Positions 3,012 through 33,684 are shown, numbered from the stretch's first letter. The stretch is 64,000 bases of DNA from Dendrobates tinctorius (GCF_039654945.1 NW_027361827.1:18290001-18354000), one strand, 5' to 3'. Notes: generated by a model from the sequence alone, not told the origin. Made by a program: numbers and translations.

Positions 3012-6000
3012 ATGGATCCCATACAAGCCTTGGCTGATCAGGTCAAGCACCTGACCCAAATGTTCCATAAGCGCAATGTGGAACAACGCACGATGGCCCA
3101 GACCCAGCAACAGTTGGTGGTTACTGTGCAGGGGGCTGTCGATGCAGGGGCTTCAAGTTCTGGGGGTAGGGATGTGTCATTAGCGTCCCCCGAATCTCCG
3201 GTCAAATTGCCAGACCTTTTCTCAGGGGATAAAAAGGAGTTCAGGTCTTTCAGAGAAGGATGCAAGCTTTTTTTTTCTCTAAGGCCCCGCTCCTCCGGGG
3301 ATGAGTTCCAAAGGGTGGGGGTCATTATTTCCCTACTTCGGGGGGCTCCGCAAGCATGGGCTTTCTCTCTGTCTTCCTCTGCTCCTGAACGTATGTCAGT
3401 GAATGCATTCTTTGAGGCCCTCGGGCACATTTATGATGAACCTGACCGAGTGCGATTGGCAGAGGACATGTTGATGAGTGTCTGTCAGGGGAAACACTCA
3501 GCTGAGTGGTTTTGTTCTGAGTTCCGCCGCTGGGCGGCAGAGGTCTCTTGGAGCGACGCCGCACTCCGAGGACTCTTTCGCAGAGGCTTGTCCGAGCGGC
3601 TGCAGGATGCCTTGGCGTTACATCCCCCACCTAACTCTCTCGAGGACGCCATGACCCAGGCCGTCCGGATGGACCGCAGGCTGCGGGCCAGAGGGGTGAT
3701 GCAGGTGGATACTCCATTATTCCCCAGTGGAAAAGAGACTGCCCCTGAGCCCATGGATGTAGGCGCCCTCTCCCTGAAGGATACGGAGAGGAAACGCCGG
3801 AAGGACAAGCAGTTATGCTTTTACTGCAGTAAAACGGGACATTGGAAAAGGGAGTGCCCGAATTGCCCGTCTTCAAACCCGGTCGGCGGGAAACGACTAG
3901 GTCTGAGTAGTCAACGGAGAGGCTGCTCAGACCCTCAGGTACCATTTTCCTCGTTTTCTAAAGTAGTACTGCCTGTGGAACTGTTTGTGGATGGTAGTTC
4001 TTTTTCCTCTACAGCCTTCGTGGACTGTGGATCATCTATTAATCTTATTGACTCCCAATTGGTCACACACTGCAAGATAGGGACAGTTAGGCTCAAGGTT
4101 CCGATCAAGGTGATGGCCATTGACTCCTCTCCCCTCACTAAGGAGGGAATTCGCTTTATGTCTGAGGTGTTTTTGCTCAGAGTGAGCGCTACTCATGTGG
4201 AAAACATAAGTTGTTTTGTGCTGGACAATCTACCTGCAGGGTTGGTGTTGGGCATGCCCTGGTTACAACGCCATAACCTAGTTATTAACTGGAAAACGGG
4301 GGAGATTGTACAATGGGGGTTTAATGATTTTGAGTTATGTGATAAATCCGCACTGCTGGTTGAACCTGTTAAATCTGTGTCTGTATCATCTGTCGAGCTG
4401 GAAGGTATTCCGGAATGCCTGAAGGACTTCGAAGATGTATTCTCCGAAAGTGAGGCCGAGACGTTACCGCCACATAGACCCTTTGACTGCGCTATTGAGC
4501 TGGTCCCGGGGGCTAAATTACCCAAAGCCCGTCTGTTTAATTTGTACGGTCCTGAGTGCTTGGCTATGAAGGAGTATATTACTGAAAGTCTGCGCAAAGG
4601 ACACATACGTCCTTCAGTCTCACCTGTGGCGGAAGGTTTCTTTTTTGTAAAGAAAAAAGATGGCGCGTTACGTCACTGTCTCGACTTCCGGGAGCTTAAT
4701 CAAATTACTGTACGGAATACGTACCCCCTTCCGTTGATTCCCGATTTATGTAACCAACTATCAGGGGCAAAGTGGTTTTCTAAACTGGACCTTCGGGGGG
4801 CATATAATCTGATAAGGGTCCGAGAGGGGGATGAATGGAAAACCGCGTTCCTCACGACCGAGGGACTATTTAAAAATTTAGTCATGCCGTTTGGTCTTAC
4901 CAACGCCCTTGCCATATTTCAGAATTTCATCAACGTGGTATTCTCGGATCTCATTGGTCGTTTTGTCGTTATCTACTTAGATGATATTTTGATATATTCC
5001 CCCGACAAGTATTCTCATTTGGAACATGTACGAACTGTGCTCCAAAGGCTTAGAGAAAATCATTTGTATGCCGAATTGGAGAAATGTGTATTCTGTGTAC
5101 AAGAGTTGTCCTTTTTGGGGTTAATTGTATCCGGTGAGGGTTTTCGCATGGACCCCAAGAAGGTGCAGGCCATTGCAGATTGGGTGCAACCCCGAGATCT
5201 TAAGGGTCTTCAGCGCTTCTTGGGGTTCGCCAATTATTACCGCAAATTTATCCGGGGGTTTTCGCAAGTGGTCAAACCTCTCACGGATCTAACATGCAAA
5301 GGTGCGCATGTGAGAAATTGGTCCTCGCTCGCAAAAGAGGCCTTTGCAACGCTGAAAAAATGTTTTATGTCTGCTCCTGTGTTAGTGCAGCCAGATCCGT
5401 CCAAACCATTCGTCGTGGAAGTGGACGCCTCTGAGGTGGGGGTGGGGGCGGCGTTGTCCCAAGGACCTGCCACTCTAACCAACCTCAGGCCATGTGCTTT
5501 CTTTTCCAAGAAGTTCTCTGCTGCGGAAAGAAATTACGACGTAGGCAATAGAGAGCTTCTTGCGGTCAAATTGGCGTTTGAAGAATGGAGGCACTTTTTG
5601 GAGGGGGCCAGTCACCCGGTTAAGGTGATCACGGATCACAAAAATTTGTCGTACATCGAGTCTGCTAAAAGACTAACGCCCAGACAGGCCCGTTGGTCAC
5701 TTTTTTTTCCCGTTTTCAGTTTACGATTACATTTCGTCCAGGGTCCAAGAATGTCAAGGCTGACGCCTTATCACGCAGTTTTCAGCCGGTGTCGCCCCCT
5801 GAGCCACCATCCTCCATTCTTCACCCTGGGGTTGTAATAGCAGAGGTCTCATCTGAATTGGAACGGGAGATTCAGGGGGCCCAGTCGCAGGCCTCGGCGG
5901 CCAAGCCGGAGGGGAAGTTGTTTGTCCCAGAGCAACTTCGCCTGAAACTCTTGCAGGAGTTCCATGAATCCAAGCTGAGTGCTCACCCTGGTATTTCAGC

Positions 6001-7226
6001 CACACGTCTGGCGGTGGCTAGGATCTTTTGGTGGCCTACCCTTGGTTCGGACATAAAAAAATTAATTGCTGGTTGTGGGGTCTGCGCTCGTTCTAAAAGC
6101 TCTCATAGCTGGCCGGCAGGGGAGCTGATACCCTTGGCAGTGCCCGAAAGGCCATGGACTCACTTATCCATGGATTTTGTTACCAATCTCCCTCCATCTA
6201 AGGGTAATACAGTGGTATGGGTAGTGGTGGACAGGTTTTCTAAGCAGGCTCATTTCGTACCCCTGTCGGCACTACCGTCAGCTGAGACGTTGTCCAGGTT
6301 GTTTGTGCAGCATGTGGTCCGGTTGCATGGGGTACCCCTGAATGTGGTGTCTGATCGTGGTGTGCAGTTTGTGGCTAAGTTTTGGAGTGCTTTCTGCAAA
6401 AAATTAGGTATGTCTCTGTCCTTTTCATCTGCATACCCTCCAGAGAGCAATGGGCAGACGGAGCGCACTAACCAGTCCCTGGAACAGATCCTCAGGTGTC
6501 TAACCTCTGCTAGACAGAATGACTGGTGCGATGCACTGCCGTTGGCTGAATTTGCCTTCAATAGTCGGGTGAGTCAATCCACTGGTAGGTCCCCTTTCTT
6601 GATTAACTATGGGTTCAGTCCTCATTTTGGTGAGTTTTCTCGTCTGGATTCGGGGTGTCCCGGGGCTGAGGACTCTGTTCAGTGGTTAAAAGATACATGG
6701 GCAGAAGTTCAGCGGAGTATATCTAGGTCTCAAGGCAGGTATAAGTTTTTCGCGGACAGGAAACGAACACCTGGTCCCATGTTTCGGGTGGGAGAGAAAG
6801 TTTGGCTCTCCACGCGAAACATTAAGTTAAAGATTCCGTCAGCCAAGTTGGGACCCAAATTCATTGGCCCGTACAAGATTGTGGAAAAAAATCAATCCAG
6901 TGGCGTATAGGCTGTGCCTTCCACCCTCTTTCAAGATCCCTAGCGTCTTCCACAAATCTCTACTGAAACCTTTTGAAGCAGTCCGGGGAGACTCCGAGTC
7001 TGCTGCTCCTCCTGTTTTGGTCGAGGGGCAGGTGGAGTATGAGGTTGGTCATATCGTAGATTCCAGGTTGGTACGGCGGTCGGTACAGTACCTAGTTCAT
7101 TGGAAGGGGTATGGACCGGAAGACAGGTCCTGGGTACCGGACCGGTTGCTGCATGCTGATCGCCTGGTGCGGGCTTTCCATGCTAGGTACCCGGGCAAGC
7201 CTGGGGGTCCAGAGGCCCCCCGTTGA
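3012..7226 (+). pseudogene. gag-pol polyprotein with two homopolymer frameshifts (~5705, ~6890)
   Basis: PEG10/RTL1-like capsid; CFYCSKTGHWKREC knuckle; protease AFVDCGS; RT YLDD; RNase H DAS; integrase HHCC plus D-D-E (MDFV, SDRG, GQTER); GPY motif; chromodomain YEVGHIVDSR...YLVHWKGYGPEDRSW. Confidence 0.95.
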
Positions 7227-7237
7227 GAGGGGGGTAC

Positions 7238-7996
7238 TGTCATGATCTCAGTGCGGGTTTGACTCGCACACGTGGGGTTAATGTCTGGAACCAGTGCTGA
7301 TGACTGGCATTTCTGGGGTTAAAGGTTGTGATCCCGGTGCAGGCTTACCTGCACACCTGGGGCTATGATTGTGGCCTCTCCCTAGTTCTGGGGGAGGCTT
7401 CTTATAGCCTCAGAACGCTCCCATCCCTGTCAGTTATACTTTCGCCCTTGGCATTGTGTGGTGACCCCTGAGTGTGTTAGTGCTGTGTTCTGGTTACTTG
7501 ATTCTCTGTGTATGACTCGGTCTGTTCTCTGGATATCGCTTTGGATTCTGCCTGGTACCTCCTATGTCTGTTTGGTTTTGATCTCTGCTTGGCCCTGATT
7601 ATCCGCTCTGTCTCCTCCCTGGTACTGTACTGATATCTTGTGTATGACCTTTTGCTTTGTCTGACCTCCCGTCTGTTTATCCCTCCTGTACCTCGCTGGT
7701 CTGTACTGTGCATGACTTCTGCTTTGCCATAATCTGAGTTCTCTGGCTTCTCTGACGCTAAGCCTCGCCCCCTTGCAGTCACATGACCATAGGTCCTGTG
7801 CAAGCTTGCTCATTTTCAGTGTCCGCAGGTCCCGTGCCTCTTTACTTTCTAGCGCTGACTGGACCCTGACACTATTAGCTTGTAGCACGCTTTGTCACCT
7901 CTGCTGCCCTTCTCCCCAGGTAACTCTTAGCACTGCTTCTGTACTCAGGACACGCGCACTGGCTCTATGAGCAAGTGTAGTGTGGTGTCTCTGACA
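7238..7996 (+). repeat. 3' LTR
   Basis: Follows the PPT; ends TGACA, then TSD CTTAA. Confidence 0.97.
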
Positions 7997-10663
7997 CTTA
8001 AACCTTCTTTCCTCCAGACGTAGAGGATGCCCCCTTGTCCCCGTCACAGGTCTAAGAGTAAAAAGATCATTAGAAAGGTCTTGGTATTGTCCCCGCATAT
8101 ATCTATACATTGTAATAAGATCACCCCTAAGCCTTCGATTCTCAAAACTAAATAGCCCCAAGTGTAATAACCTGTCTTGGTATTGCAGACCCCCTAGTTC
8201 CCTAATAACCTTGGTCACTCTTCTCTGCACCCGCTCCAGTTCAGCTATGTCTTTCTTATACACCGGAGACCAGAACTGTACACAGTATTCTAAGTGTGGT
8301 CGCACTAGTGACTTATATAGAGGTAAAATTATGTTCTCCTCCTGAGCATCTATGCCTCTTTTAATGCATCCCATTATTTTATTTGCCTTTGCAGCAGCTG
8401 CCTGACACTGGCCGCTAAATGTGAGTTTGTCGTCCACCCATATACCCAGGTCTTTTTCAGTGACAGTTTTGCCCAGTGTTTTACAATTAAGCACATAATT
8501 ATATATCTTGTTCGTTCTACCCAAGTGCATGACCTTACATTTATCCCCATTAAAGCTCATTTGCCATTTATCAGCCCAAGCTTATAGTTTACATAAATCC
8601 TCCTGTAATATAAAATTGTCCTCCTTTGTATTGATTACCCTGCAGAGTTTAGGGTCATCTGCAAATATTGAAATTCTACTCTCTATGCCCCCTACAAGGT
8701 CATTAATAAATATGTTAAAAAGAAGCGGGCCCAAAACTGACCCCTGTGGTACCCCACTGCTAACCGTGACCCAGTCCGAGTGTGTTCCATTAATAACCAC
8801 CCTTTGTTTCCTATCCCTGAGCCAGCTCTTAACCCACCTACACATATTTTCCCCTATCCCCATTGTTCTCATTTTATGTATCAACCTTTTGTGTGGCACC
8901 ATATCAAAAGCTTTTGAAAAGTCCATGTACACCACGTCCACTGCATTCCCTTGGGCCAGTCCGGAACTTACCTCTTCATAAAAGCTTATCAGATTAGTCT
9001 GACAGGAACGGTCTCTTGTAAACCCATGTTGATATTGGGTCATAAGTTTATTCTTCTCCAGATACTCCAGTATAGTATCTCTTAGAAAACCCTCCAGGAT
9101 TTTACCCACAGTTGAGGTTAAACTTACTGGCCTATAATTTCCAAGTTCAGTATTTGTCCCCTTTTTGATTATTGGCACCACATTTGCTATACGCCAGTCC
9201 TGTGGTACAGACCCTGTTATTATGGAATCTTTAAAGATTAAAAATAATGGTCTATCTATGACTGTGCTTAATTCCTGCAGTACTCGGGGGTGTATCCCAT
9301 CCGGGCCCGGGGATTTGTCAATTTTAGAGATTTTTAGACGCTGCCGTACTTCCTGCTGGGTTAAGCAGGTGACATTTAATGGACAATTTTTATCCCTGAT
9401 CATGTTATCCGTCATGGGATTTTCTCGTGTAAATACTGTCGAAAAAAAGTCATTTAGCATATTGGCTTTTTCCTCATCCTCCTCCACCATTTCACCCAGA
9501 CTATTTTTAAGGGGGCCAACACTGTCATTTTTTTAGTTTCTTACTATTTATGTAGTTAACGAATATTTTGGGATTATTTTTACTTTCTCTGGCAATGAGT
9601 CTCTCTGTCTAAATCTTTGCTGTCTTGATTTGCTTTTTACAGAATTTATTTAATCTTCTGTATTTATTTAATGCCTCATCACTACCTACTTGCTTTAATT
9701 CTCTAAATGCTTTATTTTTGTCACTTATTGCGCCCCTTACAGCTCTATTTAGCCATAGTGGTTTCCTCCTATTTCTCGCATGTTTATTCCCATACGGTAT
9801 ATATTGTGCACAGGTCCTATTCAGGATGCTAATAAACGTCTCCCATTTTCTTTGTGTATTTTTATGTCTCAGGATATCGTCCCAGTTAATTGCACCAAGA
9901 TCATCTCTCATCCGTTGGAAATTTGCCTTCCTGAAGTTTAGTGTCCTTGTAACCCCTCTACTACACATCTTATTAAAGGATACATGAAAACTTATTAATT
10001 TGTGATCACTATTACCCAAGTGACCCCCAACCCTTACATTTGATATGCGGTCTGGCCTGTTGGTTAATATTAGGTCTAGCAGTGCCCCCCATCTTGTTGG
10101 GTCCTCAACCAGTTGTGAAAGGTAATGGTCTCCCATAGTAGTCAAAAACCTATTACCTTTCCTGGAACTGCAGGTTTCGGTTCCCCAATGTATTTCAGGG
10201 TAGTTGAAGTCCCCCATAATAATGACTTCTCCTTGAGTCGCAGCTTCATCTATTTGCTTTATGAGGATATTCTCTGTTGCTTCCATTATTTTTGGAGACT
10301 TATAACAAACCCCTATCAGTAATTTATTATTTTTCCCCCCTCCCCTTATCTCTACCCACAGGGACTCTACATTTTCATTAGATTCATATATATTATCACG
10401 AAGGATGGGTTTTAAGGATGATTTTACATTTAAACACACGCCTCCCCCTCGCTTATTTGTACGGTCATTTCTGAACAGACTATAGCCCTGTAAATTAACC
10501 GCCCAGTCATGGTTCTTGTCCAGCCAGGTCTCAGATATCCCCACCATGTCATAATTATGCTCCAACAACATTAACTCCAATTCCTCCATTTTGTTGGCGA
10601 GGCTTCTGGCATTAGTATTCATGCACTTTATGTATCTCTCTGTACCTCTATTCTTTCTTAAAT

Positions 10664-13671: not shown

Positions 13672-13924
13672 GTATACATACACTCGGCGCTGTGAGTGGG
13701 TCAGGCAACGGTAACCTGACCGAGGTGGTGGTCTGCAATGTGGCGCCATCTGAGGGCACTTGTTATAGGGGCCAGGACGCCCCCCACTAATGGCTGTCAC
13801 AGTGTATGACCTCTGCAGGGGGGCGATGGCTGCTGATGTAAGAACCCGTTCACACTGCTGTGACGACAACCATGCCGCTGGTCCCACTGGCACTCCTAGG
13901 AACCAAAAAGCCAGGAGACACAGG

Positions 13925-14135
13925 ACATTAAGTTTTTGTCGCCTCAGCTGCATGATTTGCGGCTACTAGACAGCCTGAATACATGTGATCCCCTAACAAA
14001 CAGGCAATCCCCACATGTATTCAGGCTGTCTAGCAGCTGCAAATCATGCAGCTACGGCGACAAAAACTAAGTCTCCGATCATGCCCAAAATACTCGGAGG
14101 GCACCCGAGCAGCGAGCATACTCGCTCATCCCTGG
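13925..14135. mobile_element. Partial palindromic hAT-type MITE (same family as 59666-59940)
   Basis: Shares the cagctgcatgatttg...cagcctgaatacatg palindrome and ends ...actcgctcatccctg. Confidence 0.75.
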
Positions 14136-15904
14136 TCACATGAGTTTATACCATTGGGCAGTGAAAAAAAAATAATTTCAGCTTTCCCACAGAAATTTAG
14201 TTTTGGCCCCAGATTTTACATTTTCACACTGAGAAATGGGTAAAAATGGCACCAAAATGTGTCCCGCAGTTTCTGCTGAATGTAGAAATACCCCGTATGT
14301 GGCCGTACAGTCCTGCTCAGCCACACGGGGAGACTCGGGAGGGACGGAGCGCTATTTGACACTCTGAGAACAAATTATCGTAGAACAGCTTGCAGACTCC
14401 ATACACAGAGCCCCTAAGTGCCAGAAGTGCAGAATCCCCCTTCAGATGATCCCGTTTTAGAAATTGTAGCAACCATTTTGACTCCATGGGTGTTTTCCCG
14501 AAACAATAGATTAACAGCTTATAGGGTCGTCTAAAAATTAATTTTTATTTATGCCAATTAAAAACTATTGTATCCAGCAAAGTGGCCATGATCCAGAAAA
14601 AAACTCAAAAAAACACTCCTTGTAGTGTCGGGATATAACTATTGATGGAGAGAGAGCTGTCAATAATACACACATTCATTTTTGGTCAAAAATCAATAAA
14701 TGTATAGGACTAAATGGCAAATAAAGTGCTCTAGAGCAGTAAATGTGAAGGCAAGAGAAGGAAAATGTGTGGATGTGACCCAATTCATTTACAGGCTGAC
14801 ATCCGGGTCATGTCCATATGGGTAGAAGCATGCCTCACCCTGTTGTGCCCCCTGCATTACCTCCTGCCCTGACAAGGGCAGTTCCAAAGTAAGGCTTTTT
14901 CCCCCAGAAAAATTCCCTCCCGATGCATTTCTTTCTCCGTTAGGAGATGTCATTAAGGGAGTGTACTTTATATTGGGGAAGGCACCAGCTAAGAGAGACC
15001 AGAATTGCTCCAAAATAGAATAGATAAGAAAGTGCCTCTGTGCTTATAAAGTGCCTATTTGTCAAAAATATTTTAGGAATCCTACAGTAGTGAGCATTCC
15101 TGTAGGGTACAGAGTGCTGTCATCTTTTTCGTCATTTAGCTGGATCACAGATCCTTCATCTGCCTCATTTATAGGGAATTTTCAGTCGGTTCCGTCTGAT
15201 TCACGTATTTCAGAGATTTACACGGAAACCCTGGTGTAAGCGCTCAGTGCAGAGCGTAGGATAAATGTGAGCCGAGCTTTATCTTTGAGAGGCAGAATGA
15301 ACAAATCAACAGGAGGTGAAGAATTTGTTTCACTTATTTTGTACTGCATTCCTCGTGCGGTCTTAGTGATTAGATGACTTTATTCTTCAGGTCAGTACGA
15401 TTACAGCGGTACCAGATTTATATAGTTTTTTTATGTTTGGCTGCTATCACACCTTTTTTTTTTTTTTGCTTGTTTGCAAAAAACAAGTTTTTGCATCGCC
15501 ATATCTTGAGAGCTATAATTTTTCTACATTTCTGCCAACAGAGTCATGTGTGGGCTTGTTTTTTGCAGGACAAGCTGATATTTGTATTGGTACCATTTTC
15601 AGGCACATGATATTTTTATGGTCTTAACAGGCTCGTGTAGCTAGCTGACTCATAGGCCGTCATGATGACCCCGGGTTTCCACGACAATGATAGGGCCCTC
15701 GCAATGACGTAGCGGTGACGTCAATCGGACGGGAGAGGGAGCCCCCTCCCTTTTTTTAGCCCCCCCTAAATGTTGAGATTGACTTCAGGTGGTTAAACAG
15801 CCATGGGCATTGGGGGCATCACGCCTGGCTATTACAACAGGTGTCTGACTATCACGCCGATGTCGATCATGCAGGCACCGCTCTTGTGTCTTCACCATTG
15901 TCAT

Positions 15905-24063: not shown

Positions 24064-26864
24064 TATATATACATTAATAAGTTATCATTAAACATTAGCA
24101 TATAAGAATAATTAGCTTGATGAGATATTAATATAAGCTCTTACATGATCCAAATAATTGTATGCTTGAGGAATGTAAAGAAGATAAGAGGGCAGAAAGG
24201 GAAAGATTGGGAAGGAAAAGGAGGGTTGGGGTGGGAAAAAAAAAGCAAAAAAAAAACATGACGTATGGAAACCAGCACTTCTCAGGAGACCACATCTACT
24301 ACAACATTCTACTTTACGTATTACTTACTGACAGCCAGATTGCCAAGTTATTCCCCTCATTCCACTGGCAATGAAAAGATTCAAGGCGATCGTTATCATG
24401 TGCAGTCATGTTTCTATTTTCATAATGCTGTTAACCTCTTTCACTCATTTGCCAAAAGTGAGAGTTTTTGTGGTTTTCCAGTGACATGGAATAATGGACT
24501 TAACAGCTGGTATAGAATGTCTAAGGATATCTATCTTTGCCTCTTGAGATGGAATCCGGAGTAATGGAAAGTAGGCCTATTTGTGGGGAGGGTATGACCC
24601 TGCTACCCGTGAGACTATTGTACAGTGAGAAAATTGAATTCCAGAACCCAGAAACCAATGGGGATTATCCCCATATATGTAACCAGAGCTGTGGAGTGGG
24701 TAAGCCAAACCTCAGACTCCCCAATTTCCCTGACCCCACAGCACTGGTCACTACCTGACCATGTGCATAAAGTGCAGCACGGATTCATCTCAATAAAAAG
24801 CAGAGATCCTTACATTAGAACAGACATTTATGGGAAGTTCACACTAGGTGTTTTTTTCTGCAGGAAAACCTGATCTCTTGGCAGGAAAGAAGCTGCAGAA
24901 AAAAAAGCATGTTTTTCTTTTTTCCTTTTTTTGCGGCATTTTTTATGCGGTTTGTTTGCTGCTAAATTTCTCTTGTTCATGCTGATAAAGTTTAGTGTTG
25001 GAAAAAGGTTCTATTCCATAGAATCAGGTTTTCACACAAAAACGCAGCAAAACCTTATACCTGCATTTTTGGTGCTATTTTTCAGTGTTTTTTGAACATC
25101 GAGTCAAGTCAATGGGTGAAAGAAGTGACATGCTCTATGTCCAAAAAAACATGCAAAGCACAAAATACTGATGACAAAAAAACAGTGTGTGCAGGAGATT
25201 TCTCAATTTTCATAGGCTTTGCTGGTACTGTAAAATGCAGCTGAAAATTAGCATAAAAACACAGCAAAAATGCCTAATTTTTGCCTTCTAGGACATTTCA
25301 TAACTTTCCCGAATTCTTCTGAAAATATTTACAGTAAATCTTGCATTGAACTACTGTGCTCAATTTCTCATATATTTTAGGAGTCGGTCCATTTTATTCT
25401 GACTCCATCAAAATGGACGCCAACTACAACGCTGACTCCACATCTCTCTATAACATAGACCCAGCTGCTCTCCAAGCCACTCCACACCTCCACCCGCACA
25501 AGTTAGACACAGAGGGGAAGATGCTATGTAGCATAGTGGGACAATGGTATCATCTCAATAGAATCTTATAGTTTTTCTCCTAAATATGGCAAGTAATAGG
25601 TAATTGCGCATGCCCGAGAAATGTTTTCACAGAGCAGGCGCTGCCATAGGAGACAGAAGGAGGCGTGGCACAGACGGCAGAGCAGGGGAATGATGGACGT
25701 CTATGGCAGCACAGGGACATGATGGACGGCTATGGGAGGCGGGGCCCACATGCTACAGAGACATGTTTGAAGGCGGGGAGGCGGCTGATACAGGGGGGAC
25801 ACACCATACCTATGGGACTGAATACAGGTATGAGGAGCTATTTATAAAAGTCGATATTTCAGCGTTACTGGGGGTCAGAAACGGAAGATCCACCTTCACA
25901 GAATGCAGCCTTAGTGCTGCTGAAGGTGGCGCTTTAACTGAAAAACGCCCTGGGGGGGGTGACAGGTTCCCGCCCCCGACACGTTAAACCCGGGCACACT
26001 GCGATCAAACATGATCGCAGTGTACCGGGGGTTTAGGGAAGCCTCGGGAGGGAGGGGGCTCCCTCCGTGCTTCCCTGAGACCCCGCAGCAGGTCCCTGGA
26101 TCCAATATGGCGGAGGGGACCTTCGGGGGCCTGCAAGGAAGCCTGTGAAGCGCCTGTGACAGATCGCTGATCTGTCACAGCGATCTGTGATGTGACAGAT
26201 CAGCGATCTGTCACATGACAGTTATGTGCCCCCTGGGACAATGTAATAAAGTTTAAAAAAGAAAAGTGTAAAAATAATTTATAAAAAATCGCTAAATAAA
26301 TTAAGAAAAAAATATTCCCTAATAAATTCATTTTTTGGAAATAAAAAAAAGGCAAGAAATGGGGAACAATCGTGAGTTCCTACTGTAATGGAAAACTTGA
26401 ATAAAAATCCAGAAAACAAGGGGTTAAATCAGTAACTAATACCACTAAAAAGGGTATACTCCGAATAAAATCATATAAACAAAAGAGGAAGGAGTACAAT
26501 TACCCATAAAATCTGTATAAATTTTATTACATAATCATAAATATTCAATCCAAGAATAGAAACATCTTAAAAATTATAAAGATGAAGGATACATGACAGA
26601 ATAACTGATACAATCACAAAATTGTATAGACCAGGGCTTCAGAGACTATAAAGCATATATAACAATATAATCTACAAGTAAACATAGACCAATACTAACA
26701 TTATCAATGTGCTGGGCATTCACAAATACCAGTGTGTATATAGTCAGCTCAATCTATAACACCATACATATGGTACTATAAACCTCCTAAAACTTGCCAA
26801 AAGAACCACCCAGCACACAGTGAAGCCTCACCCAAATTGGTCCCAGAGATCAGTCAGAAGAGTG

Positions 26865-26906
26865 CAGCCCCAACGCGCGTTTCGCGTGGGCTTCCTCAGG
26901 GGGCTG
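26865..26906 (-). ncRNA. Minimal hammerhead ribozyme in the inverted pLTR
   Basis: Exact reverse complement of 29539-29580. Confidence 0.85.
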
Positions 26907-27454
26907 TGCACACGTTTGTAAAGTTATCCCTTTATATATACCCCATACAGCTGTCCCTAATCACAGACAATGTAAGCGGTGCATGTAGATGAAATCGTGC
27001 AGGGCTGGATGTGACGTCACTCCCAGGCCTCCTATGCGATGAGTGAACACAGGAGACGCCACCATGGCAACTCCCGTACACATCCACCGCAGTGCGGACG
27101 CTGCGAGTGACGCTCCCGCCCATACACGTCATGGACATGCGCACATGTCCAGGGAAGATCCGGAATCAAAACAATGTAGGTCACATCCGGTCAAATGTGA
27201 AAAATGAGGTTGAATGACCTCATGGAGATCAACGTCCAACACTGCGGAGACACCATCACATGTTTCTCAATGCAGTGATTCTAGAGCAATGCCCCCATCC
27301 CTTATGGGAAATATGCAAAACACAAGCCGCGGAGACACCATCACAGGTTTCTCAACGCAAGCAAAGACTAGCCAGGTCTTTCCCCGGGAAGGAACAACCA
27401 CGGGAAGGGCAGTCTCCAATGAAGGAAACCACCTATGCCAAAACATGGTATCCA

Positions 27455-27498
27455 TCCACAGACAGCTGTTTCGGGGTATTGCCCCTCATCAGTGTGGA
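27455..27498 (-). ncRNA. Type I hammerhead ribozyme (repeat unit 1)
   Basis: Minus strand: UCCACA-CUGAUGA-GGGG(CAAUA)CCCC-GAAA-CAGCUG-UC|UGUGGA, i.e. stem I, core, stem II, palindromic stem III and a GUC site (cleavage at 27461/27460). Confidence 0.92.
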
Positions 27499-27797
27499 GT
27501 AGGAAACTGGCTAGTAGGAGCAATGCCTAGTAAAAGACTGTGAAAAATGAGGATGAATGACCTCATGGAGATCAACAACCAACACTGCGGAGACACCATC
27601 ACATGTTTCTCAACGCAGTGATTCTAGAGCAATGCCCCCATCCCCTATGGGAAATATGCAAAACACAAGCCGCGGAGACACCATCACATGTTTCTCAATG
27701 CAAGCAATGACTAGCCAGGTCTTTCCCTGGGAAGGAACAACCACGGGAAGGGCAGTCTCCAATGAAGGAAACCACCTATGCCAAAACATGGTATCCA

Positions 27798-27841
27798 TCC
27801 ACAGACAGCTGTTTCGGGGTATTGCCCCTCATCAGTGTGGA
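27798..27841 (-). ncRNA. Type I hammerhead ribozyme (repeat unit 2)
   Basis: Identical to unit 1. The third copy (28141-28172) is cut just before CUGAUGA. Confidence 0.92.
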
Positions 27842-28172
27842 GTAGGAAACTGGCTAGTAGGAGCAATGCCTAGTAAAAGACTGTGAAAAATGAGGATGAA
27901 TGACCCCATGGAGATCAACATCCAACACTGCGGAGACACCATCACATGTTTCTCAACGCAGTGATTCTAGAGCAGTGCCCCCATCCCTTATGGGAAATAT
28001 GCAAAACACAAGCCGCGGAGACACTATCACATGTTTCTCAACGCAAGCAATGACAAGCCAGGTCTTTCCCCGGGAAGGAACAACCACGGGAAGGGCAGTT
28101 TCCAATGAAGGAAACCACCTATGCCAAAACATGGCATCCATCCACAGACAGCTGTTTCGGGGGTATTGCCCC

Positions 28173-28512
28173 CATAGTATACTATGCACGCTGCACGTGT
28201 TCATTGGTATATGTGGGATTGACCACAAGAGAACTTCGTGTTAGAACACGGGAACATGTTAGGGATATTATGGCAGCAAGGAATGTGGATGATATTTGTT
28301 CCTTGAAAACCCTCCCAAGACATTTTAAAGAAAAACATAATTGTAATCCAAAGGAACTAAAAATATGTGGGATAGATAGGATTCGATTGGGAGTTAGGGG
28401 TAGTGATTATAAAAGCATTTTGGCCCAGAGAGAGTGCAAATGGATTGCTACTCTGGGTACAATGGTTACTGATGGTTTAAATGAGCAAATCAGCTTTGCC
28501 TCATATCTGTAA
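28173..28512 (+). pseudogene. 5'-truncated Penelope-like GIY-YIG endonuclease domain
   Basis: IVYYARCTCSLVYVGLTTRELRVRTREH...RECKWIATLGTMVTDGLN contains the VY/YVG, R, E and GLN motifs. Confidence 0.92.
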
Positions 28513-29538
28513 TCTGGATTTGTTTTTAATCGTGGTTTTGTTTTCCCTTGTTTTTAATTTTATATGTTTATTTTTTTTTTTATAGTTTTATTTGGTATAT
28601 TACTTTTTCGATCTGCCCTTGATGGGATTCTCCGGTTCTTCTCTAAAACAGTTGGAATATGTGGCTTTTACAGGGAATACTTACCATGGGTTGAAATTGA
28701 ATTATCATCGCCTCTATGGATCAAGAATAACGAAATTTATGATACATTATATAATTGTATTTTCACATTATTTTTCACTATATCTTGTATGATGTAATTG
28801 TTTATAAAATTGTGTGAATGTCTATTAATACAGTGTTTTGTTTCACTTGTCACTATATGATTTGTATTACTCCATTTATGGGGTTCTTAGTTAGTATGGT
28901 TATTTACACTTTTGTCACTTTTTATATAAACATTGATCCATTCATGTGATTAATTGGCAACATGGCTTTTTGATATGGTATTTTATATATATATATTCAT
29001 GATATGGGCTATTGTGTGCTCACACCTTGTAATTTTGGTGTGATGTTGCCATGGTGATGTTTGTTAGCTTGCACCGATGGCGATTTTTGTAAATACGTTA
29101 CTGTACTGCGCATAACTAATATAAGGTTTGTTTGTGCGCCTATTTTATGTCCATTCGCCATATCGGATTGGGGCTGAGATCACTTTGGCAACGGTCTTTT
29201 AGCATATTCTAATGGTGTTTTAGGGTTTAACGTCACTTCCGGTCATTTGACCGGATGTGACCTACATTGTTTTGATTCCGGATCTTCCCTGGACATGTGC
29301 GCATGTCCATGACGTGTATGGGCGGGAGTGTCGCACGTGGCGTCCGCAGTGCGGTGGATGTGTACGGGAGTTGCCATGGTTGCGGCTCCTGTGTTCACTC
29401 ATCGCATAGGAGGCCTGGGAGTGACGTCACATCCGGCCCTGCACGATTTATTTCATCTACATGCGCCGCTTACATTGTCTGTGATTAGGGACAGCTGTAT
29501 TGGGTATATATAAAGGGATAACTTTACAAACGTGTGCA

Positions 29539-29580
29539 CAGCCCCCTGAGGAAGCCCACGCGAAACGCGCGTTGGGGCTG
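29539..29580 (+). ncRNA. Minimal hammerhead ribozyme of the PLE pLTR
   Basis: CAGCCCC-CUGAGGA-AGCCCACGC-GAAA-CGCGCG-UU|GGGGCUG; TATATATAAA lies ~30 nt upstream. Confidence 0.85.
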
Positions 29581-30441
29581 CACTCTTCTGACCGATCACT
29601 GGGACCAATTTGGGTGAGACTTCACTGTGTGCTGGGTGGTTCTTTTGGCATGTTTTAGGAGGTTTATAGTACCATATGTATGGTGTGATAGATTGAGCTG
29701 ACTATATATACACTGGTATTTGTGAATGCCCAGCACATTGATGTTAGTATTGGTCTATGTTTACGTTTAGATTATATTGTTATATATGCTTTATAGTCTC
29801 TGAAGCCCTGGTCTATACAATTTTGTGATTGTATCAGTTATGCTGTCATGTATCCTTCATCTTTATAATTTTTAAGATGTTTCTATTCTTGGATTGAACA
29901 TTTATTATTATGTAATAAAATGTGTACAGATTTTCTGGGTAATTGTGCTCCTTCCTCTTTTGTTTATATGTAATGGAAAACTTGTAGGTGAGCTGTCCGG
30001 CTCCCTAGTATCGTATATTAATTCAGAATAGTTGTAGGAGGAACCTGTTACGTTGAAAAGGAGGCTTGTTGCCAGTTTCTCTGTAGTTATATTAAAAATA
30101 AAAAAAACCTAAAATTTCAAATCACCCCCCTTTCGCCCCAATCAAAATAAAACAATAAAAAAATCACATATACACATATTAGGTATCGCTGCGTACAGAA
30201 TCGCCCGATCTATCAATAAAAAAAACATTAACCCGATCGTTAAACGGCGTAGTGAGAGAAAAATTCAAAACACCACAATTACAGTTTTTTGGTCGCCGTG
30301 ACACTGCATTAAAATGCAATAACGGGCGATCAAAGGAAAGTATTTGCACAAACGTGGTATAATTAAAAACATCAGCCCAGCATGCAAAAAATAAGCCCTC
30401 ACCCGACCCCAGATCACGAAACATGGAGGAGCTACGGGTCT

Positions 30442-30474
<33 letters not shown>

Positions 30475-31015
30475 AGCAAACTTTGGAATTTTTTTCACCA
30501 CCTAGATAAAAGAGGACATAGACATGTTTGGTGTCTATGAACTCGTCATGACCTGGAGAATCATTGTGGCAAAAAAGCCAAGCAAAAAACAAGTGTGGGA
30601 TTGCAGTTTCTTTTTTCCCATTTTCGAGTAGATGTCATGGTAAAAACAATGGTGTAGTTTAAAAGTACAATTCGTCCCGCAAAAAATAAGCCCTCACATG
30701 GCCATATTGATGGAAAAATAAAAAAGTTATGGCTCTGGAAAGAAGGGGAGCGAAAAATCGAAGAAAAAAAAAGCTCCGGGAGTTAAGGGGTTAAAGAAGC
30801 CAACCTGATTGTTGCTAACAATTGAGAGTAGGTAGTGGGAGAGCGGTGATGCAATTATTTTAGAGTTTATTTTGTCATCTAAATTAAGGATATTGGATGA
30901 AAATTAGTGCAGGCATTTGGTTCTTTTCCAAGCTTTGATAAAACCGTTATGTGAGCCTTAAGTGATTAGGGGGCATTTGGGAAGTCTTCTGAGTTATTAT
31001 TGGACACTTGCTTAT

Positions 31016-31632
31016 AGGGAATCTGTTACCCCATTTTTGGCTTATAAGCTGCGGCTGTGGCCATCAGGTGCTTATCTACAGCATTCTGTAATGCTGTATA
31101 TAAGCTCCCGACATAACCTGAAAGATAAGTCAAAAAAATTTAGATTATACTCACCCTGGCGTTCGGTCCGGTCCAATGGGTGTCGCCGTTCGGTCCGGCG
31201 CCTCCCATCTTCATACCATGATGTCCTCCTCCTTGCTTCTTTCTCGGCTCCTGCACAGGCGTACTTTATCTTCCCTGTTGAGGGCAGAGTAAAGTACTGC
31301 AGTGCGCAGGCGCGGGACCTCTCTGTCCTTTCCCGACGCCTGCGCACTGCAGTACTTTACTCTGCCCTCAACAGGGCAGATAAAGTACGCCTGCGCAGGA
31401 GCCGAGGGAGAAGCAAGGAGGAGGACATCATCGTGTGAAGATGGGAGGACCCAGACCGGACCGCGACACTCACCGCATCTGACTCCGCCAACCGGTGAAT
31501 ATAATTTAATGTGTTTTTCTTATCTTTCAGATTTCATCGGTGGCTTATCTACAGCATTACAGAATGCTGTAGACAAGCCCCTGATGGCGGTGGCCGCAGC
31601 TTATAGGGCTAAAATGGGGTGACAGATTCCCT
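31016..31632. mobile_element. Palindromic T2/Kolobok-type MITE
   Basis: AGGGAATCTGT...ACAGATTCCCT|TTAA; the whole element is an inverted repeat. Confidence 0.85.
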
Positions 31633-31821: not shown

Positions 31822-33537
31822 CACTGCTCAAAAAAATAACGGAAACACTTAAACAACAGAATATAATTCCACGTAAATCAAACTTCTGTGAAATCAAACT
31901 GTCCACTTAGGAAGCAACACTGATTGACAATCAATTTCGCATGCTGTTGTGCAAATGGAATAGGCAACAGATGGAAATTATTGGCTATTATCAAGACACA
32001 CAATAAAGGAGTGGTTCTGCAGGTGGGGACCACAGACCACATCTCAGTACCAATGCTTTCTGGCTGATGTTTTGGTCACTTTTGAATGTTGGTTGTGCTT
32101 TCACACTCGTGGTAGCATGAAACGGACTCTACAACCCACACAAGTGGCTCACCTTTTGCTTTGATTACTGCTTTGCATACTCTTGGCATTCTCTTGATGA
32201 GCTTCAAGAGGTAGTCACCGGAAATGGTTTTCACTTCACAGGTGTGCCCTGTCAAGTTTAATAAGTGGGATTTCTTGCCTTATAAATGAGGTTGGGACCA
32301 TCAGTTATGTTGTGCAGAAGTCTGGTGGATACACAGCTGATAGTCCTACTGAATAGACTGTTAGAATTTTGTATTATGGCAAGAAAAAAGCAGCTAAGTA
32401 AAGAAAAACGAGTGGCCATCATTACTTTAAGAAATGAGGGTCAGTCAGTCCGAAAAATTGGGAAAACTTTGAAAGTGTCCCCAAGCGCAGTGGCAAAAAC
32501 CATCAAGCGCTACAAAGAAACTGGCTCACATGAGGACCGCCCCAGGAAAGGAAGACCAAGAGTCACCTCTGCTGCGGAGGATAAGTTCATCCGAGTCACC
32601 AGCCTCAGAAATCGCAGGTTAACAGCAGCTCAGATTAGAGACCAGGTCAATGCCACACAGAGTTCTAGCAGCAGACACATCTCTACAACAACTGTTAAGA
32701 GGAGACTTTGTGCAGCAGGCCTTCATGGTAAAATAGCTGCTAGGAAACCACTGCTAAGGACAGGCAACAAGCAGAAGAGACTTGTTTGGGCTAAAGAACA
32801 CAAGGAATGGACATTAGACCAGTGGAAATCTGTGCTTTGGTCTGATGAGTCCAAATTTGAGATCTTTGGTTCCAACCACCGTGTCTTTGTGTGACAGAAA
32901 TGGTGAACGGATTGGCTCTACATGCCTGGTTCTCACCATGAAGCATGGAGGAGGAGGTGTGATGGTGTGGGGGTGCTTTGCTGGTGACACTGTTGGGGAT
33001 TTATTTAAAATTGAAGGCATACTGAACCAGCATGGCTACCACAGCATCTTGCAGCGGCGTGCTATTCTATCCGGTTTGCGTTTAGTTGGACCATCATTTA
33101 TTTTTCAACAGGACAATGACCCCAAACACACCTCCAGGCTGTGTAAGGGCTATTTGACCATGAAGGAGAGTGATGGGGTGCTACGCCAGATGACCTGGCC
33201 TCCACTGTCACCAGACCTGAACCCAATCGAGATGGTTTGGGGTGAGCTGGACCTCAGAGTGAAGGCAAAAGGGCCAACAAGTGCTAAGCATCTCTGGAAA
33301 CTCCTTCAAGACTGTTGGAAGACCATTTCCGGTGACTACCTCTTGAAGCTCATCAAGAGAATGCCAAGAGGTGGCTACTTTGAAGAACCTAGAAGACATA
33401 TTTTCAGTTGTTTCACACTTTTTTGTTAATTATATATTTCCACATGTGTCAATTCATAGGTTGATGCCTTCAGAGTGAATCTACAATTTTCATAGTCATG
33501 AAAATAAAGAAAAACTCTTTGAATGAGGTGTGTCCAA
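31822..33537 (+). mobile_element. Chimeric Tc1-type element; body encodes a frameshifted DD38E (Intruder-type) transposase (32376-33429)
   Basis: MARKKQLSKEKRVAII...WSDE...QQDNDPKH...NPIE with 38 residues between the second D and E. The left 330 bp (CACTGCTCAAAAAAATAA) belong to a different family from the right TIR. Confidence 0.88.
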
Positions 33538-33684
33538 NNNNNNNNNNNNNNNNNNNNNNNNNNNNNNNNNNNNNNNNNNNNNNNNNNNNNNNNNNNNNNN
33601 NNNNNNNNNNNNNNNNNNNNNNNNNNNNNNNNNNNNNNNNNNNNNNNNNNNNNNNNNNNNNNNNNNNNNNNNNNNNNNNNNNNN
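33538..33684. other. Assembly gap (147 N)
   Basis: Run of N. Confidence 1.

Follow-up and report, generated by a model that had tools for sequence, protein, structure and literature searches.

How did a tandem array of ribozyme-bearing units come to lie in the middle of a retroelement to which it shows no similarity? The question is raised by positions 26384-29984 of a 64-kb stretch of Dendrobates tinctorius (NW_027361827.1:18290001-18354000; hereafter the window, whose positions serve as coordinates throughout), in which 2.85 copies of a 343-bp hammerhead retrozyme unit are enclosed between two head-to-head copies of a 5′-truncated Penelope-like element (PLE). The evidence supports one old PLE-type insertion inside one target site duplication (TSD). 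The array was probably co-inserted in that event, whatever the route; the explanation we favour, at about even odds, is that the PLE reverse transcriptase (RT) itself switched from PLE RNA to retrozyme RNA during the insertion. The locus is best read, by analogy, as a combination of the known grammar of PLE insertion with an RT template-switch chimera, a topological analogue of the chimeras formed between U6 RNA and L1.

Anatomy of the insertion

The structure is bounded by a 16-bp TSD, TGTAATGGAAAACTTG, at 26384-26399 and 29969-29984. The copies are identical at 16/16 positions and are the only two in the window, even when 2 mismatches are allowed (0.1 expected). Enclosed between them, in order, are a 72-bp tail, an inverted PLE arm (minus strand), the hammerhead array (minus strand), a fragment of a GIY-YIG endonuclease (EN), a 3′ untranslated region (UTR), and a direct PLE arm (plus strand). 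An initial annotation of this DNA had described the same layout, namely a single 16-bp duplication around an inverted pseudo-long terminal repeat (pLTR) with a tail of ~70 bp, 2.85 copies of a 343-bp hammerhead repeat, both on the minus strand, and a GIY-YIG end, 3′ UTR and pLTR on the plus strand; every part was recovered where it had been placed.

The left arm (26472-27197, minus strand) repeats, in inverted orientation, the terminal ~726 bp of the PLE (its pLTR or 3′ end), and the right arm (29244-29968, plus strand, 725 bp) is the same 3′ end in direct orientation. The first two bases of the right TSD copy (TG) also continue the PLE sequence and represent a priming microhomology. Counting substitutions alone, the left arm is 96.4% identical to 29244-29970: there are 26 substitutions over 723 aligned bases plus 2 indels, or ~1.8% per arm, and 7 of the 26 are CpG-type while 14 are transversions. 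Each arm carries a candidate PLE-type minimal type I hammerhead, at 26866-26905 on the minus strand and 29540-29579 on the plus strand, with identical sequences. The right-arm motif lies directly downstream of a TATA-like box, with CRE (cAMP response element)-like and TATA-like motifs upstream of it, and reaches 25.2 bits with the Rfam model Hammerhead_1 (E = 1.6 × 10⁻⁴), below the gathering score of 34; at gathering thresholds, Rfam gave no match anywhere in the window. The left arm departs from the PLE sequence at 29244, inside a small palindrome (CCGGTCA-TT-TGACCGG, 29239-29254) lying beside the ETS-like and CRE-like motifs of a putative promoter in the pLTR.

The 72-bp tail (26400-26471, minus strand) is found in the left arm only, and the UTR and EN fragment in the right arm only. 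As each arm has sequence that is absent from the other, neither was copied from its partner, and the two were primed independently on PLE RNA at two nicks. Further copies were sought in Logan contigs of public DNA sequencing runs, with matches accepted down to 88% identity and depth expressed as word (k-mer) depth. In one such copy (a contig from run X2, corresponding to 26397-26589 with 7 differences) the tail is contiguous with the PLE end, which identifies it as genuine element sequence.

Immediately to the right of the array is a 5′-truncated PLE open reading frame (ORF; 28173-28512, plus strand), recognized by protein homology and consisting of 112 aa of GIY-YIG endonuclease domain and a stop codon. 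Positions 28174-28509 read VYY-ARCTC-S-LVYVG...REH, with a weak Pfam GIY-YIG match (E = 0.019, below cutoff). A search of 1.84 billion representative proteins returned 653 homologues, 139 of them at E ≤ 1 × 10⁻¹⁰, and the best match in the representative library is 58% identical. The matched region is the C-terminus of proteins with RVT_1, itself weak, upstream, an arrangement that indicates PLE architecture. Homology starts at the first residue past the array, and the right arm as a whole begins at 28173/28174; a protein similarity that appeared to run from the EN domain into the array came down to a handful of chance identities and was rejected. Among proteins of similar length the fragment had no close relative, and no identical protein is on record for window ORFs 32286-32891 and 28105-28509. 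PLE RT sequence is absent from this copy, which is truncated at 28173, and none was found in the rest of the window. The AT-rich 3′ UTR that follows (28513-29243, plus strand, 731 bp) is single copy in the genome, with a depth of 6.6-12 in runs X1/X2.

A TSD, 5′ truncation, an adjacent inverted copy and a one-sided tail, the elements of PLE insertion grammar, are therefore all present. Published PLE insertions similarly have an adjacent inverted 5′-truncated copy, often with a tail at one end only (Craig et al. 2021, PMC8557442, citing Evgen'ev and Arkhipova 2005); they differ from this locus in that their tails measure 30-40 nt, as opposed to 72 nt, and in that a foreign array is additional here.

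The initial annotation had proposed that an empty site with one 16-mer might be found in other haplotypes or species. A contig from a second individual (run X6) does join 26383 to 29969 with a single 16-mer (16 letters fit both sides), but it was rejected as the orthologous allele: its depth is 32.6 compared with 2.5-5 for single-copy sequence, it has 3 differences, and its shorter side is 29 letters long. The depth and the 3 differences mark it as a paralogue of the host repeat, so that it supports the TSD and the pre-insertion sequence and not a presence/absence polymorphism. The host of the insertion is a very high-copy repeat (25957-26427 and 30039-30500; word depth 1 × 10⁵-5 × 10⁵). It contains perfect 25-nt hairpins at 26155-26215 with sub-threshold matches to microRNA models (mir-5985, 43 bits vs. 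100), and a hairpin resembling these is found at 31281-31368.

The hammerhead retrozyme array

The array occupies 27196-28172, with its sense on the minus strand, and shares the TG at 27196-27197 with the left arm. Repeat analysis gives a period of 343, 2.8 copies and 96% matches. Complete hammerhead cores are present in unit 1 (27461-27492) and unit 2 (27804-27835), both on the minus strand, and a 5′-truncated hammerhead without CUGAUGA is present in unit 3 (28147-28172, minus strand), where the array ends inside helix II. The core consists of CUGAUGA, a 4-bp helix II, GAAA, a 2-bp helix III with a 4-nt loop, GUC, and a 6-bp helix I partner. Helix III of newt satellite 2 is likewise very short. 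The exact pattern occurs twice, once each in unit 1 and unit 2, against a chance expectation of 0. Rfam covariance models scored the array hammerhead at only 13-16 bits at relaxed thresholds, which is too weak for a call, although the weak alignments show the same core; the hammerhead assignment accordingly rests on the exact core pattern. Predicted cleavage sites on the minus strand are 27461/27460, 27804/27803 and 28147/28146. The array ends 263 nt 3′ of one of these sites and starts 26 nt 5′ of another, within helix II, so its ends bear no relation to self-cleavage, as had been claimed.

The predicted fold of the monomer RNA is more stable than those of shuffled sequences (z = -2.7). ORFs of the unit, including one of 109 aa, belong to no Pfam family and have no homologue, and the unit is regarded as non-coding. 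In both orientations, local alignment of the unit with the PLE fragment scored no better than shuffles; a 20-nt resemblance of the array hammerhead region to 29490-29509 was likewise equal to shuffles and was rejected. Within each unit, a 31-nt direct subrepeat occurs twice at a spacing of 85 nt (27244-27274 and 27329-27359, with units 2-3 in phase). Read on the sense strand, the two resemble a hammerhead's 3′ half, with GAAAC, a 4-bp helix III and GUC but no CUGAUGA, and are possibly relics of shorter ancestral units.

Depths in the public runs separate the array from its PLE surroundings. Array words have a depth of 1.5 × 10⁵-5.6 × 10⁵ in the source individual, tens of thousands of times that of single-copy sequence (~7), and a similar depth in a second species, from which it follows that the retrozyme family is enormous and predates the species split. 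The PLE UTR, on the other hand, is single copy, and no match at 88% identity was seen in the second species. Over 29254-29410, the 5′ half of the PLE segment present in both arms, depth is 4-10 in X1/X2, about that of the two arms alone, and depth attributable to the PLE climbs only near the extreme 3′ end, to ~10-20 copies. A ~300-nt hammerhead part (29411-29724, and also 26742-26898) is common to some hundred other repeats, with depths of 650-2000 vs. ~7; this part may also belong to other PLE families, or to a retrozyme family of pLTR origin such as a 2026 preprint proposes (10.64898/2026.07.22.740005). In contigs from the second individual (X6), the UTR and its boundary with the repeat are free of differences, which shows that these sequences are not a private artefact. 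The data thus support the identification of the array as a foreign retrozyme multimer.

The units differ from one another by 15 substitutions and 1 indel over 977 nt, or ~1.6% per unit. The initial annotation had proposed a test of whether such differences are private relative to one consensus. Within the array each difference is found in one unit only, but the letter carried by unit 3 at 27975, unlike that of units 1 and 2, appears to be a major variant of the family, with the qualification that contig placement among near-identical units is uncertain.

Routes to the array-PLE junctions

The array sits exactly at the junction of the two arms and nowhere else in 2.6 kb of PLE sequence. At the left join, the TG overlap (27196-27197) matches the expected continuation of both partners, as the initial annotation had reported; the right join (28172/28173) is blunt, with no microhomology. 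The same annotation had singled out a TSD of the array's own as evidence against its account, and none is present, the flanks of 27196 and 28172 having nothing in common. The hammerheads of the array and of the left arm are both on the minus strand, the orientation needed if RT ran on continuously from PLE RNA to sense retrozyme RNA. Divergence of ~1.6% per unit and ~1.8% per arm makes the ages of array and arms indistinguishable.

These four features bear directly on a later or DNA-level capture, in which an array or a free retrozyme cDNA was taken up after or outside reverse transcription, for example as filler when the two cDNAs were end-joined or when a break in the middle of the palindrome was repaired. 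In favour of such a capture are the fragility of palindrome centres, the blunt right join, and an abundance of the retrozyme that could make it a frequent filler. Such an event would nevertheless have had to find the arm junction among 2.6 kb of PLE sequence, leave no TSD around the array, occur at a time that matches the age of the arms, and adopt the sense orientation to the left arm that RT continuity predicts, and we consider it improbable.

A switch by RT during the insertion would proceed as follows. The GIY-YIG nuclease would nick the target on both strands with a stagger of 16 bp, and each 3′-OH would prime reverse transcription of PLE RNA, giving two 5′-truncated copies that extend toward each other. 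The right copy would be primed 70-72 nt further inside the RNA, through the TG shared with the target. The left-copy cDNA, corresponding to the plus strand of the window, would copy the tail together with 726 nt from the 3′ end of the PLE, leave its template internally, and continue through the 2-nt TG/CA overlap on the sense RNA of the unrelated, abundant 343-nt hammerhead retrozyme. RT would then pass three ribozyme sites, uncleaved or religated, over 2.85 units, and the left cDNA would in the end be linked to its counterpart where the endonuclease domain has its first codon. This is in essence the jump put forward in the initial annotation. Junction position, lack of an array TSD, orientation and age fit co-insertion by such a switch; they do not establish a jump over a chimeric RNA or DNA capture.

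The geometry is symmetrical, and the jump could in principle have been made from the opposite side: RT on the right arm, at the start of EN, would have switched to antisense retrozyme RNA and copied leftward, with the TG overlap marking the point where the resulting cDNA was finally linked to the left arm. A cDNA-cDNA join of that kind would be just as likely to show microhomology. An antisense template would be needed, however, and the abundant circular species of retrozymes is the ribozyme-bearing polarity (PMC7229834); we regard this route as highly improbable.

For a switch made from the left arm, the template may equally have been a circle, an uncleaved multimer or a series of monomers. 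The traversal of three ribozyme sites, together with entry 263 nt from a cleavage site, argues against a self-cleaved monomer whose 3′ end served as acceptor, and points to a circle or an uncleaved multimer. To that extent the circular or multimeric template of the initial annotation fits; the variant at 27975 gives a circle in particular no specific support. That PLE RT switched onto a circular retrozyme RNA, and that rolling-circle reverse transcription then produced a multimeric cDNA, is a tentative and rather doubtful proposal.

Exactly the same sequence is predicted if the template was already chimeric. An earlier truncated PLE (726 nt plus tail) would have landed inside a genomic array, and read-through RNA from that locus would have templated the left arm, so that no jump took place here and the TG overlap is older. 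Units that are not identical, including the apparent common variant at 27975, are what a genomic array would naturally contain; the family is very abundant (1.5 × 10⁵-5.6 × 10⁵ vs. ~7), and heavy transcription of retrozyme arrays has been reported (PMC7229834). Against this, the depth of 4-10 at 29254-29410, about that of the two arms, means that no extant source is seen at ≥88% identity. The master PLE, which every account needs, is likewise not visible, yet with a chimeric template a chimeric locus must have been lost as well as the master element, two sources instead of one. The depth ratio also suggests, as an estimate, that arrays make up a small part of the genome, in which case a PLE landing in one would be uncommon. 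Overall, we judge a pre-existing chimera to be unlikely.

Several observations weigh against an RT switch, or against particular forms of it. An overlap of TG has a ~6% chance of arising under random joining. The apparent family variant at 27975 is a poor fit to three passes around one circle, and the excess of transversions between the arms (14/26) could mean that slightly different templates were used. No other copy of the PLE family reaches far enough 5′ to reveal whether the array-PLE join recurs, and no contig piece seen among the public runs spans 27196 or 28172. The evidence comes from one locus.

The last two joins also bear on the assembly, which might have linked a retrozyme array to PLE fragments artefactually. 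The inverted structures of PLEs are a known source of difficulty in assembly (PMC8557442), and bridging contigs for 27196 and 28172 are lacking among the pieces seen. The perfect TSD and the coherent PLE grammar are nonetheless difficult to reconcile with a misjoin, contigs of two samples match the unique parts exactly, and the nearest N run (33538-33684) is 3.5 kb away. Moreover, an X1 contig covering 28419-29273 ends 30 nt into the repeat, where a break is expected in a 31-mer graph that a second path enters at 29244. The chance of an artefact therefore appears very slight.

Elsewhere in the window, at 3357-7196, there are coding remnants of a Ty3/gypsy-type chromovirus (RNase H, integrase and chromodomain) with 39-63% identity to P0028 and P0030.

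Related structures and the identity of the helper

A PLE of similar form, with apparently nothing but PLE sequence between its arms, is present in a related frog (L004:9044-16350, GCA_958301615.1). This young palindromic element, whose EN domain is 54% identical to that of the window, has a 14-bp TSD, a 44-nt tail confined to the left side, and head-to-head arms of ~3.5 kb that are 99-100% complementary and 173 nt apart; the centre reads as putative RT-coding sequence. It also has 68-bp tandem subrepeats, and in each terminal repeat a candidate GAAACGCGCGT-type hammerhead, the motif being of the type seen in the window. The layout is thus the same in the two frogs, with the difference that the arms in the window are separated by a 977-bp retrozyme multimer. 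Neither the 343-bp unit nor the window's pLTR was found at the four related-PLE loci (L001-L004). Tandem arrays of ~390 bp, with no strict hammerhead match, occur near PLE genes of the related frog (L001:1382-3929; L003:63-1384, 7537-8880 and 13698-14856), and one array-type hammerhead core lies at L001:20901-20932.

The proposed switch has its closest parallel in U6/L1 chimeras, in which the RT of a long interspersed nuclear element (LINE) leaves the LINE RNA for a small RNA of high abundance (PMC11838501, PMC4476161; double jumps, PMC2104539). The topology is the same: a sense small RNA lies 5′ of the element 3′ end, there is no TSD at the join and one outer TSD, and microhomology is slight or absent. 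Unlike in U6/L1, the enzyme would be a PLE RT, the captured RNA is 2.85 units long, and the chimera forms one arm of two. The two arms are in turn comparable to L1 twin priming (PMC2837659), in which both strands of a staggered break prime cDNA and an inverted structure results within one TSD. In twin priming, however, the parts are different segments of one RNA, whereas both arms here start at the element 3′ end and give an inverted repeat.

The array resembles the non-LTR retrozymes of metazoans (those without long terminal repeats) and the satellite 2-like repeats of amphibians in its tandem, non-coding unit of ~340 bp, within the ~150-450 bp that defines such units, its type I hammerhead, its abundance and the predicted strong structure of its monomer RNA. 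It differs from known non-LTR retrozymes in having no TSD of its own and in being embedded in a PLE insertion. Retrozyme-pLTR homology has been described for 24/57 Xenopus retrozyme families (Li, Clavereau and Pollet 2026 preprint, 10.64898/2026.07.22.740005); the array unit in the window, by comparison, is without similarity to the terminal repeat of this PLE. Mobilisation of animal retrozymes by PLEs is a proposal drawn from co-occurrence and hammerhead type (Cervera and de la Pena 2020, PMC7229834), a study that also found retrozyme arrays heavily transcribed, with the ribozyme-bearing polarity as the abundant circular species. A literature search found no physical PLE-retrozyme junction inside one insertion event, the 2026 preprint reporting no chimeric junctions, and no paper linking PLEs to template switching onto retrozymes.

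Two claims of the initial annotation went beyond what the locus bears, namely that it would identify the helper family and would be direct physical evidence of a helper-parasite link. A PLE family that is close to single copy cannot be named as the helper of a retrozyme whose depth is tens of thousands of times greater. A jump onto a very abundant RNA, as by L1 onto U6, would show proximity and template competence, not a dedicated partnership. The locus alone therefore specifies neither the helper family nor the machinery that normally mobilises these repeats.

Evidence for PLE-mediated mobilisation of retrozymes has so far been indirect, consisting of co-occurrence, hammerhead type, and similarity between retrozyme and PLE terminal repeats. 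With a locus of this kind the helper question becomes countable, as chimeras of PLE 3′ ends and retrozymes within a shared TSD can be enumerated genome-wide. If RT made the join, PLE-primed reverse transcription can use retrozyme RNA and can yield several tandem units in one run, which is the step that the rolling-circle model needs. Should the rolling-circle reading itself prove true, the insertion would be the first physical record of PLE machinery making the tandem retrozyme arrays of animals.

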